A DNA stretch of 62,987 nucleotides, filler included, from Reticulomyxa filosa (lineage: Eukaryota > Protista > Foraminifera): the NCBI GenBank assembly GCA_000512085.1. It is 12 parts of 12 records of this genome, joined end to end, with 100 filler letters (N's around TTAATTAATTAA, not from the genome) between each part and the next. Parts side by side here need not be neighbours in the genome. Positions count along the whole stretch, not along the records: positions 14,137 to 22,045 come from ASPP01011126.1; 11 more parts are not named here. One strand, 5' to 3'. The notes under the pieces are model-generated. The model was not told where the DNA came from, ran no database searches, and saw only the letters and a program-made list of their open reading frames with translations. Positions 15,323-22,045 of this stretch are shown here, one piece after another (position 1 is the stretch's first letter; every line of letters begins with the position of its first letter). The translations under genes and the position numbers were made by a program.

Positions 15323-16382
15323 TTATGTATCTTTGACTAGTCTATTCAATAATATTTCCGATTGCTGGCTGCAACAACCAAAACAAAATTGGAAGATATT
15401 CTCAGCGAAAGTAAAGCTACTCAGCATCAACATACCTTGAAAAACGCAGTCCATATGTATATGCAAACTAACACCAGAGCACCAAGCAATCGCAAAAGAA
15501 AAAATAGCACAAATAATACTGGTCAAAGCAATAATACCACATTTCTTAACATGCATAAGCATTTTCATTGTTTCATTTGAAATTTCGTGATTGAGTGGAT
15601 TACCTCCAAGTTGCACAATATCAAGTTCCTCATTTCTGTGCACCGCACGTGCAGTACTGACCATTCTTGTAATGTACATATAGCCGATAATGATATTCAA
15701 TGTGCTTACAACACCAGCTCCAATTGCAGTTAGCATATTAAAAGGTACTGAAGCAAGATGAAATATCCAATACACTTGTTTTTCATTTATTTCGCTAGTT
15801 GAAGAGGAAGGCAAATCAAAATCACTAATTTTAAAGTATTGCAAACATCCAGCAGAAGATGCAAACTAACCATCTAATACATGACAATAAGAATTGTCAA
15901 TATCATTGTCGAATACAATCCCCAAAGACGATATTTTTCAATCACAATAATGAATTCTCAAATACGATCACTGATAAACATTTCTACACCATATTTTTAT
16001 TTTTTGCACATAAACTATATATATGATGTATAGATATCAAACCCAATCTTTTCAGCCAAAAAAATACTGCAGTACTATATATTGAAAGAAATACTGAAGA
16101 AATAATAAAAAGTAAAATTTGACAAATGGGAACATTATGTAACCACCAATTTTGTCCGATACCAATAAAGAGTAAGCATTGCAAGCACAAAGCTAGCCAC
16201 ATCATAACATGGTAAAATAGACATGCCATCCGGAGACTTGGATGCACATTCTCTGGTTTCCACAAATGATAAAAACTGTATATGCAAGAAAACGTTTCTG
16301 CCACCAACAATAAGACAAGAAAAATTATATACGTCCCAAGTGGACGAGCTGGTATTTCCAATTCTACACAAAATTTAGACAT
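15323..16382 (-). pseudogene. Multi-pass (about 7TM, GPCR-like) membrane protein gene with disrupted frame
   Basis: Hydrophobic helices occur in both ORFs. After the intron (acceptor ~15973) the frame has stops or shifts at about 15860-15950, so it is either a pseudogene or error-laden sequence. Confidence 0.5.
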
Positions 16383-17938: not shown

Positions 17939-19641
17939 TTATCGATGGGGATCCCACACCCAAAAGTTGGCTGTTTAATGAGAGAAAATTAAACATACTG
18001 TTTATCATCTTTTAGTAAAATAAAAGAAAAAAAACAACATACCGATCCATTTTTCACCTTTCTTGACTGGTAATGCAGCATGCAAGCTCAAATCGTCCGC
18101 ATTTCCATCTTCCAACATACTGTAAAATAAGACAGCATTACCTTTTCCAGCATGGACCTTCAAATAGCCATTTTTGGCCTAAATACTTTTTTAAAAAAAA
18201 TCTGGTATTGACATCTGGGGCGAAAAAACAGAACAAACTTTTGGAAACGCAGTTTCGCCACCAGCATCAGGAGCAGTTTGGTTATTTAAGTAAAATAATA
18301 ACGTAATCATTCTTTGTTGTGGATGTCCATCCGCACCAAAGTCATGATGACTAAATAAAGACACAAGACAAGGAGGAACAAAGAAAATTACAAATATCAA
18401 TGCTTGACATAAATTTTCATATGAATATTTAAAAATGTGTGGCGTACATAATATCATCAAACCTTGTGTATTCCTGTCCAACTTGGTAATTGACCACTTG
18501 CAACTGCTCAACATTTTTGTCAGGGTACAAAACACTTTCGGAGATATTCAAAATATCAGCAGCACGGCGATACAACGTTTCCATTACCAAATGTTCATTA
18601 CGATCAAGCCAAGTGTTTCTCGACGTGCGTGTGTTGCTGACCAACCCACCATGCGTTCCTGCCAATGATCGTTTGATTTTTGGTTTTGCCAAGCTTATCA
18701 CTAGATCCGCTTCAAAATCGCTTAGTGCCTGTTTTTTTTTAAAAAATAAATTTTTCTCCCCTTTTTTTTTTTTTTTTAGTCTCCCCTTAAAAAAAGCTTC
18801 TCCAAAATAAAAAGATTACAAAACGTTATTGATTCGAAACACTTTGGGCTCAGTGGACAACGCTTCCAAAGCGAAGGAGACCGGTTGGGTGTCACGACAT
18901 TTTTCAATGGCTGATGGGTCTTGCGAATTTTCTGGAATGCATTTCCAAAAGTATTCATTCGAAGACACATGATGGGTCTGCCCAACGTATTCCGCTGGCC
19001 ATATGTGCAACACTGGGGGACTTCTCGGATAGTATGCAAGCCACTGTTGGAATGTAGTATATTTATATTCCAATCACGATTTTAATTTAATGTTGTAGAT
19101 ATATATTGGAAGGCTTCCAAAACAAAATCAACTTTTTCTTTTCTTTTTAAAAAAGGTACGTAACAGGTCTTCCGGTCCTTTTTCTGTAATCTTCCACAAA
19201 TCTTTGTTCTTCTAATAATTGTTGGTAATACTTTATATCGTTTTCATTACTGTTATCTTCCTCCAATGGTAAAATATATAAGTTCTTTTCTTCTGTCACG
19301 TGCACTCTTGCAAACTCTTTTTCGGGACCTTTTTTAGCCGGGGCGAACACAAACACGTGCCCGGCGTATGAACTTGTTGCTGATGTCCCTCTTGGGTCTA
19401 TTTTGCCTTGATATAACAGTTCATTGCTCTCTGGATTTTGCCAGTAATAATCTATCCAGGATGATCGAGGGTTTTTTATCACTACTGCCACCGGACGAAG
19501 CTCTGCCATTTCTTCTTCCTCTTCGTATGTGTGTGTTTCTTCGTATGCATGTGCTTCTCCGCTTGAGTCCACTTCCACTGAACTGATATGGCATTGACCA
19601 AATACCAAAAGCCAAAGAAAAAAATAAAATACACTTTGCAT
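17939..19641 (-). CDS. Prolyl 4-hydroxylase (2OG-Fe(II) dioxygenase) with signal peptide and N-terminal VHL-beta-like domain, 6 exons
   Basis: Splices cleanly: LSTEPKVF, RTSRNTW, EQLQVVNYQVGQEYTSHHDF (HxD), RMITLLFYLN, GGETAFP, NAVLFYS, SLHAALPVKKGEKWIANFWVWDP. Confidence 0.93.
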
Positions 19642-20658: not shown

Positions 20659-21899
20659 TTATTTTCCTGTTTTATTTTTGTCTTTTTTTCCAGAGTGAAT
20701 GACCATTTCTTTATGAATTTGATGACAAGTTTGGTCAACCAAGTCCAACAACTTGTCAATATTGGATCGCCAATCATTGAGAACAGAGTTGGTGGTTTCT
20801 TTCTTGCGGAATCGAATTTTACCAGCTAATCTATCTGTACGTGCAAATATCGTGCCGGCATTGACCATTTCAGATACATACTTTTCTGTTTCCTGTAATT
20901 TCAATAACGAACACATTACAAACATTGTGATAATCACAAGAAGGAGAAAGAGAGAGGATCTAATAAAGACAAATGAATTCAATACAACTAACAGCGTACC
21001 TCTGAAGAGACTCCCAAGAAATGGGCAAGTCTTTGGGTTGTAATTTGATTGTAATATTTTTCAACTACTCGAATATTGTGTTGGACAACGCGGTCATGTA
21101 ACAATTCCCCAAATGACTGATTTTCATCTTTGACTCCAGTAAAGCGGAAGGCTTGTAAATACTCACTCATTTCAGGAAGCAAAGGCCAAGACACAAGTTC
21201 CCAAGTTGTCAAAAGTCGCAATAATTCTCTGTATATTACATAAGTGATTCTCTTTTTGTAATAAATAATAATAATAATAAAAAATGAAGTGATATCTCAC
21301 AACAAACCTAAAAACTGGTAATTGCTCCAGCATTTTACTCTCAGCTTCAATCACTTTGTTCAACAAATCCCATTGTTCATTTCCAAAGGGAGCCAAAATC
21401 AGTGCAAAGACGGAATTGGCTAACGCCTAATTCGCAATCCAAAAACACACAACACACATCGACATCAGACCTTCAAATGAGTTTATTTTGTAACATGCGT
21501 AAAAGAGGTGTTTTTATTTATTTATTTATTTATTGTTGTTGTTGTTATTGTTCCAATGTCTCTATATTTTTGATTTGGCATGTGACGAATTGAGAAGGGA
21601 GAATATATGTATATGTATAAAATAACCTGCTCTTTCTCTTCTGGAGATTTGAGCAAATCTTTTAAACGACGATAAGCTTTGGACAGTTCTAAGTAATTTC
21701 TATCGCGATGATAAAAGTAAATCAAAGATAAGTTCCAATATTTGATTTCCAAGTCTTCTAAATTTGACATGATTTTTGTGGTAATTTTGTTTCGAATAAT
21801 ACCACCTCGCACATAATCGCGCTTTGCCAAGCACAAACGCACTTGCTCTAACAAAAAGTCACATTTTTCTCGTTTCACCATTGAGCCAAACGTTTCAAT
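20659..21899 (-). CDS. PSMD12: 26S proteasome regulatory subunit Rpn5 (PCI domain), 5' truncated
   Basis: IETFGSMVKREKCDFLLEQVRLCL, RVVQHNIRVVEKYY, VLNDWRSNIDKLLDLVDQTCHQIHKEM. Confidence 0.95.
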
Positions 21900-22045
21900 C
21901 TTTGTTTTGTTTTTTTTTTTAAAAAAAAAAGAGAGTGTTTGCAAGTGAGTTATAATTTGGCGGTTTGCATAGGCATCCCCTCGGAGTATATACATATATG
22001 TATATATGTTAGTAGTTCGAGATTGGGGAAAAAAAGTGATTGATT

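Follow-up and report, generated by a model that had tools for sequence, protein, structure and literature searches.

Why should an enzyme that makes hydroxyproline carry, ahead of its catalytic core, a domain resembling the protein that reads hydroxyproline? The question is raised by a gene of the foraminiferan Reticulomyxa filosa that lies on the minus strand at positions 17939-19641 of the window, the whole 62,987-nucleotide stretch of joined genomic pieces analysed here (assembly GCA_000512085.1), and that encodes a prolyl 4-hydroxylase (P4H) behind a domain similar to the beta domain of pVHL. The latter is the textbook hydroxyproline (Hyp) reader and is commonly treated as something that animals invented in connection with HIF. 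Reading of the strand and a check of splice sites give a gene of six exons with 413 codons plus TAA (coding sequence 1242 nt). The domain at the N-terminus genuinely belongs to the VHL-beta family, of which it is a divergent member, and the resemblance is far beyond chance. Its residues further suggest that it may be a peptide-docking module of a luminal P4H, most likely one that holds prolines already hydroxylated; we give this functional reading a probability of roughly 0.5.

Searches and folds of the window protein itself were made with exon 1 or with single exons, and full-length work was done on natural homologues, for example the transcript-derived Bolivina homologue P0011. The two structural elements on which the family assignment depends are the following.

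19255 to 19503, minus strand: VHL-beta-like beta-sandwich, exon-1 residues 47-129, from AlphaFold2, Foldseek, VIA-align and the family profile
19174 to 19245, minus strand: 24-residue helix following the beta-sandwich, exon-1 residues 133-156 (model residues 89-112), from the AlphaFold2 model

The AlphaFold2 model, computed from an input of 29 homologous copies, has seven strands and the 24-residue helix, with a mean predicted local distance difference test score (pLDDT) of 94.3. When it was compared with the PDB using Foldseek, pVHL accounted for all of the best 50 of 77 matches (E<=0.001), with E about 1e-5 and a probability of 1.00. VIA-align, which is independent of Foldseek, also ranked pVHL first, with a Z score of 9.1 and a root-mean-square deviation (rmsd) of 1.9 Å over 80 residues (model 3-85 against VHL 68-156); the next-ranked chain after pVHL is unrelated and scores 6.9. 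A family profile built from 45 copies matches human pVHL with E 4.6e-4 (23.6 bits) in a single ungapped stretch covering VHL 73-126, and the neighbours of the domain in language-model feature space are VHL clusters. The sequence-only reading of this locus had placed a VHL-beta-like domain in exon 1, behind a hydrophobic N-terminus and in frame with a P4H, on the basis of a peptide at about 19485-19345 on the minus strand, and both the placement and the fold are borne out.

The profile match has a defined scope. Its 45 copies comprise the copies next to the P4H, the distal copies and repeats from non-P4H and bacterial proteins, and pVHL was reached only once the latter two groups had been added; the profile of the 29 P4H-proximal copies alone gave no pVHL match. 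The two top rows of the 45-copy search, designed 'Scone' propellers, were discarded as sums of many sub-threshold repeat matches. Single-sequence phmmer of exon 1 against the PDB gave 0 matches at E<=10, and the only Pfam match of exon 1 is a sub-threshold one to DUF2080. A Pfam VHL search, proposed with the sequence-only reading, has a divided outcome: PF01847 does not match exon 1 even at E<=10, but it does match, above gathering score, the segments that phmmer aligns in the relatives P0022 (62 bits) and P0024. Among the 29 homologous copies the Pfam model reaches E<=1 in only 4 (best 0.015). Those relatives come from a phmmer search with exon-1 residues 45-159 against 1.84 billion representatives, which found 40, mostly P4Hs with the same N-terminal module and a few unrelated multi-repeat proteins. 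In P0017 the phmmer match falls on the P4H-proximal copy and the Pfam VHL match (24.4 bits, above gathering score) on the distal copy.

The helix and the pVHL alpha domain do not superpose, since the VIA alignment ends at model residue 85 and VHL residue 156. No alpha domain of the kind that binds Elongin C through a BC box was found, the sandwich being followed by one 24-residue helix only; Pfam recognises a VHL box neither in exon 1 nor in the full-length homologues, and no BC-box pattern was seen by eye. The absence of an Elongin-binding alpha domain had been remarked on before, and the single helix and the lack of any other VHL-family Pfam match agree with it. The helix is a family feature in its own right: it was detected beside the domain in nearly all members, its Tyr/Phe/Tyr and Arg-Thr-Gly residues are kept in the 29 homologues, and a conserved Arg-Thr-Gly-x-Pro ends it at the exon 1/2 junction.

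pVHL structures show the Hyp hydroxyl bonded by Ser111 and His115, with Trp88, Tyr98 and Trp117 as the walls of the pocket. The ungapped alignment of the profile with pVHL gives the equivalents in the window protein as Trp for Trp88, Ser for Ser111, Tyr for Tyr112, Gly for Gly114, His for His115, Phe for Trp117 and Phe for Phe119. The codons concerned are these.

19443-19441, minus strand: Trp, Trp88 equivalent
19413-19411, minus strand: Tyr, disputed Tyr98 equivalent
19371-19369, minus strand: Ser, Ser111 equivalent
19368-19366, minus strand: Tyr, Tyr112 equivalent
19359-19357, minus strand: His, His115 equivalent
19353-19351, minus strand: Phe, Trp117 equivalent

Across the 29 P4H-proximal copies, the His115 position is His and the Tyr112 position Tyr in every case, and the Trp117 position is Phe in 28. 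Ser/Thr occupies the Ser111 position in 26 (Ser 18, Thr 8), and the Trp88 position holds Trp in 25 and Tyr in 4. Of the pocket residues picked out by eye in the sequence-only reading, those for Trp88, Ser111, His115 and Trp117 (as Phe) are kept and are conserved in orthologues and paralogues, whereas the profile alignment shifts the one for Tyr98 by one position. The window sequence has one extra residue in the loop before the disputed Tyr, so that the by-eye match may still be possible.

The distribution of the fusion is broader than one genome. Local hidden Markov models for four parts of the protein gave the order VHL-like domain, helix, Cys-pair linker and P4H in about 35 of 40 representative matches; the order is fixed in essentially every match that is long enough, and the number of VHL-like copies ranges from one to three. 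Named carriers are Reticulomyxa filosa (two paralogues), Bolivina argentea (at least 3), Elphidium margaritaceum and the stramenopile Pinguiococcus, in keeping with the earlier suggestion that similar fusions may exist in other SAR protists. A shape search of the ESM Atlas found a 'procollagen-proline 4-dioxygenase' cluster matching the whole 115-residue module (TM score 0.79, rmsd 2.1 Å); the cluster is mainly diatom, with the phylum known for 10 of its 81 members, and the fusion is, judging from this model-based match, probably present in diatoms as well. A word-based protein search with P0009 returned 7 close relatives only.

Two or three tandem VHL-like copies precede the P4H in P0017, P0018, P0034, P0037, P0039, P0040 and P0041, which are stramenopile-like or metagenomic. 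In the distal copies the Ser111 position is invariably Thr and the Tyr112 position varies, and it is these copies that Pfam VHL recognises. Two weak phmmer matches, P0014 (1436 aa, probably bacterial, with fn3/Big_5/Ig repeats) and P0027 (763 aa, with an N-terminal CARD matched by CARD_2), were not confirmed by the domain model and are probably marginal or unrelated beta-sandwich repeats. The gene neighbourhoods of the non-P4H VHL-repeat proteins P0022 and P0028 contain no P4H neighbour.

Outside P4Hs, the same Atlas search found bacterial VHL-beta domains (Planctomycetota, Verrucomicrobiota) fused to DPP-IV/S9 prolyl peptidases, LRR/F-box-like proteins and SASA esterases, as well as diatom PUB+VHL proteins; these match the window domain with TM scores of 0.59-0.64 and rmsd of 1.5-2.7 Å. 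They hint at a general proline-peptide-binding or adaptor role of VHL-beta domains outside animals.

The support for the docking role is indirect and comes from the homology with pVHL, the invariance of the His and Ser/Thr, the fusion to a Hyp writer and the bacterial prolyl-peptidase fusions. A module that binds proline peptides fits the bacterial VHL-beta domains found on proline-specific DPP-IV/S9 peptidases, and the holding of Hyp is the most likely variant because Ser111, His115 and the aromatic walls Trp88 and Trp117 (as Phe) are kept. In the mechanism we propose, the VHL-beta homologue, tethered ahead of the catalytic core by the conserved helix and Cys-pair linker, would dock proline-rich secretory substrates and would preferentially grip prolines that are already hydroxylated, so that the enzyme would stay with a repetitive substrate as it hydroxylates the prolines nearby. 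Such processivity, like the O2 feedback suggested earlier, is speculation.

Several observations weigh against this proposal. One is the failure of the Pfam VHL model to match exon 1, given above. In the profile alignment, the Tyr/Phe that the family conserves pairs with pVHL Pro97, and the partner of Tyr98 is a polar residue that varies. Divergence is quicker in the VHL-like exons, which are 57-62% identical to those of the second Reticulomyxa locus, L003, than in the catalytic exons, where identity is 86-90%. Lastly, the signature of Trp and Ser/Thr-aromatic-x-Gly-His-x-Phe also occurs in the distal copies and in bacterial and other repeats without a P4H. It marks the whole VHL-beta family and may reflect the fold, not a site for a ligand; because it is family-wide, including bacterial repeats without a P4H, the pocket residues alone are no proof of reader function.

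This last point is the core of a different explanation, in which sandwich and helix are purely structural, serving as a scaffold or in oligomerisation, localisation or folding, and the pocket residues merely sign the fold. It would also agree with the poorly kept Tyr98 equivalent and with the long amphipathic helix and the predicted template modelling score (pTM) of 0.76 of the full-length model, which would point to tight intramolecular packing. Parallels exist in the N-terminal dimerisation domain of collagen P4H and in the Tox1 domain of plant type-2 P4H; accessory domains of plant P4Hs can serve Golgi localisation (PMC11275109). We nevertheless regard a purely structural role, the main competing explanation, as unlikely, if plainly worth keeping in view, since the pocket residues of pVHL are not core residues. 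The pVHL-HIF structures place them at the surface, in contact with the ligand. Across 29 divergent copies linked to a P4H, moreover, the His never changes and the Ser/Thr hardly does, and the occurrence of VHL-beta on other proline-directed enzymes (DPP-IV/S9) speaks for a role connected with a ligand.

If the domain does bind peptides, it could bind unmodified polyproline-II stretches only, and so recruit substrate without selectivity for Hyp. The peptide-substrate-binding (PSB) domain of collagen P4H binds Pro-rich as well as Hyp-containing peptides (PMC12433258), the DPP-IV-type peptidases that carry VHL-beta act on X-Pro, Trp117 is replaced by Phe and the Tyr98 position is uncertain, all of which would suit such a role. 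The best-conserved polar positions of the family are, however, precisely the hydroxyl-bonding Ser111 and His115, which a plain pyrrolidine ring would not need, and we consider exclusive binding of unmodified proline improbable. Docking with a preference for hydroxylated proline is therefore the reading with which we go on.

Is the protein to which the domain is attached a Hyp writer, and is it a single gene? The six exons, all on the minus strand, are the following.

19641-19165, minus strand: exon 1, signal-like segment, acidic linker, VHL-beta-like domain and helix
19043-18825, minus strand: exon 2, linker particular to the family and containing two conserved Cys, followed by the first P4H catalytic strand, from tblastn with homologues
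18728-18463, minus strand: exon 3, N-terminal half of the P4H catalytic domain, aligning to Cr-P4H-1 via homologue P0011
18350-18239, minus strand: exon 4, iron-binding His-x-Asp, with His at 18349-18347 and Asp at 18343-18341
18178-18043, minus strand: exon 5, distal iron-binding His at 18082-18080 and 2-oxoglutarate-binding Lys at 18052-18050
17970-17939, minus strand: exon 6, last strand of the catalytic domain, with the TAA stop at 17941-17939

The five introns are all GT..AG and 60-121 nt long, the surrounding DNA piece is AT-rich (GC 25-39%), and there is an in-frame stop 18 codons upstream of the start codon. Using tblastn with the transcript-derived Bolivina homologues (P0006/P0011), the alignment gaps coincide exactly with the introns, and the ambiguous exon 2/3 junction was settled with the end of exon 2 at 18825 and the start of exon 3 at 18728; exon 6 matches the C-termini of homologues P0009, P0011 and P0019. 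When the exons were translated singly and mapped in order, all five intron positions proved to be kept in Reticulomyxa filosa locus L003, with identities of 57, 62, 90, 86, 87 and 100% for exons 1 to 6 (9 of 9 residues in the last), that is, 57-62% for the VHL-like domain and linker in exons 1-2 and 86-100% for catalytic exons 3-6.

These data bear on the suspicion that the fusion is an artefact, either two adjacent genes wrongly joined or a chance resemblance between beta-sandwiches, which would suit the lack of a VHL match in the Pfam and single-sequence PDB searches of exon 1. The transcriptome-derived homologues from Bolivina, Elphidium and Pinguiococcus, however, hold both parts in one open reading frame (ORF), the exon 1/2 junction matches homologues residue for residue, and the intron positions kept in L003 stand together with the fold and profile evidence. 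A merging of genes is excluded by the transcript-derived homologues and the conserved exon structure, and we consider an artefact of either kind extremely improbable.

The His-x-Asp (18349-18341), the distal His and the Lys align to the corresponding motifs of Chlamydomonas Cr-P4H-1 via homologue P0011, so the claim of a complete P4H domain with HxD...H...K stands, its motifs being carried by exons 4 and 5. With Pfam 2OG-FeII_Oxy_3 (PF13640), exon 4 alone gave E 1.3e-4 and exon 5 alone E 0.041, both sub-threshold. The closest solved relatives of the catalytic domain were sought with P0011, the window exons being kept unjoined; its PDB matches are Chlamydomonas Cr-P4H-1 (E 2.4e-27), Bacillus anthracis P4H (E 7e-25), human collagen P4H alpha-2 (E 2.5e-17) and PBCV-1 P4H (E 2e-13). 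No HIF-type EGLN/PHD chain occurs among these matches at E<=0.001, and for that reason the enzyme is assigned by sequence to the collagen/plant cell-wall P4H class and not to the oxygen-sensor class. No Pfam match to the N-terminal dimerisation/PSB region (P4Ha_N) was found in exon 1 or homologues. The full-length P0011 model, in which the ordered parts have pLDDT near 90 and residues 16-78 are disordered, suggests by its pTM (given above) a compact multi-domain assembly.

Where the enzyme acts may be indicated by the N-terminal segments of exon 1.

19582 to 19641, minus strand: start codon and hydrophobic N-terminal segment, about residues 1-20, likely signal peptide, from translation and hydropathy
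19504 to 19581, minus strand: acidic Glu-rich linker, about residues 21-46, probably disordered, from sequence and the homologue model

The Kyte-Doolittle mean over 15 residues is 1.7-1.8 at residues 1-5 of exon 1. Most homologues carry a hydrophobic stretch at the N-terminus, and a type-II anchor occurs in two; the equivalent of the acidic linker in P0011 (residues 16-78) has pLDDT <50. The Cys pair of the exon 2 linker forms a conserved Trp-x-Cys-x-Pro...Cys in the family alignment and is modelled in P0011 with pLDDT 83-97. Secretory targeting, as proposed in the sequence-only reading, is plausible because of the hydrophobic segments and type-II anchors of the family, the conserved Cys pair and a catalytic domain nearest to plant/algal and collagen P4Hs; we infer from these sequence features that the window protein is a luminal P4H of the endoplasmic reticulum or Golgi.

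The deposited model at L003, ETO33788.1 (P0001, 462 aa; ASPP01003136.1 4626-6233), seems to include introns 1, 2, 3 and 5 as coding sequence and to lack the last exon of that gene. The upstream neighbours of the two loci differ, with RPN5 at the window gene and Utp11 at L003, its nearest relative; the two may be paralogous loci. The RPN5/PSMD12 gene, for a subunit of the 26S proteasome lid, is multi-exon and lies at 20659-21995 on the minus strand, upstream of the P4H gene; its ORF fragments match PSMD12-CSN4_N (E 3e-20), PCI and RPN5_C (E 2e-11), and its 5' end is maybe cut by the edge of the DNA piece. At 15323-16382, also on the minus strand, two neighbouring ORFs of 173 and 132 aa are rich in hydrophobic stretches and resemble exons of a membrane protein with several passes; Pfam matched neither, and the Atlas gave only weak leads to the 7TM-like THH1/TOM1-3, Dicty_CAR and STE3 (scores <=0.89).

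A Reticulomyxa homologue is annotated only as 'Fe2OG dioxygenase domain-containing protein', the VHL-like domain having been missed. Full-text literature searches turned up no account of a VHL-P4H fusion, in agreement with the sequence-only reading, to which no functional description was known, and Iyer et al. 2010 do not mention VHL (PMC2938197). The architecture is probably visible in domain databases yet undescribed, because the distal copies of some two-copy members pass the Pfam VHL threshold.

Compared with the pVHL beta domain (PF01847), the substrate receptor of the CRL2-VHL ligase, the window domain has the same beta-sandwich, profile homology over VHL 73-126 and the pocket-region residues listed above, Trp117 being Phe. 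It differs in having only about 18% identity, no match to the Pfam model, an uncertain Tyr98 equivalent and no alpha domain or BC box; it is predicted to be luminal, not cytosolic, and is covalently joined to a P4H. Cr-P4H-1 (PDB 2jig, 3gze), together with other monomeric plant, algal and bacterial P4Hs, is the closest solved catalytic relative and shares the His-x-Asp...His...Lys. It is an enzyme of the secretory-pathway type and acts on proline-rich cell-surface proteins. Its alignment with P0011 begins only at residue 264, and it is without the VHL-like domain, helix and Cys-pair linker. HIF-type EGLN/PHD enzymes differ in being a cytosolic class that is not the closest, whereas the window protein has an N-terminal hydrophobic segment.

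Functionally, the PSB domain of animal collagen P4H alpha is the nearest likeness to the proposed role, being non-catalytic, N-terminal of the catalytic domain and a binder of Pro-rich/Hyp peptides (PMC12433258). It differs in being all-helical and TPR-like, of an unrelated fold, and part of an alpha2-beta2 tetramer with PDI. Plant type-2 P4Hs with Tox1/ShK are likewise secretory P4Hs with a small accessory domain (PMC11275109), but there the domain is C-terminal, has another fold and is reported to have a role in Golgi localisation. The bacterial VHL-beta fusions and the diatom PUB+VHL proteins use the same small sandwich as an accessory module, several times on proline-specific enzymes, though with differing partners; the function of prokaryotic VHL-beta domains has been stated to be unknown (PMC7736814).

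A broader and more tentative idea, which we consider possible though doubtful, is that the VHL-beta fold is an ancient reader of Pro/Hyp peptides, older than the animal HIF pathway. Tethered in one to three copies to the secretory P4H of SAR protists, it would let a product-holding enzyme walk along repetitive wall or matrix proteins, and the recognition of hydroxylated HIF by animal pVHL would have been co-opted from it. In a variant of lower probability, the domain would present mono-hydroxylated prolines for a second hydroxylation. The basis for this variant is the 3,4-dihydroxyproline of diatom walls.

For the family, the finding places a VHL-beta homologue within a Hyp-making enzyme of the collagen/plant class, predicted to be secretory, in Foraminifera and stramenopiles. 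If its pocket binds Hyp or Pro peptides, the protein would be a natural writer-reader enzyme and would suggest how a P4H that lacks a PSB domain could hydroxylate repetitive substrates processively. For the many uncharacterised VHL-beta domains of bacteria and protists, those fused to prolyl peptidases among them, it would also give a testable hint of what they originally did.

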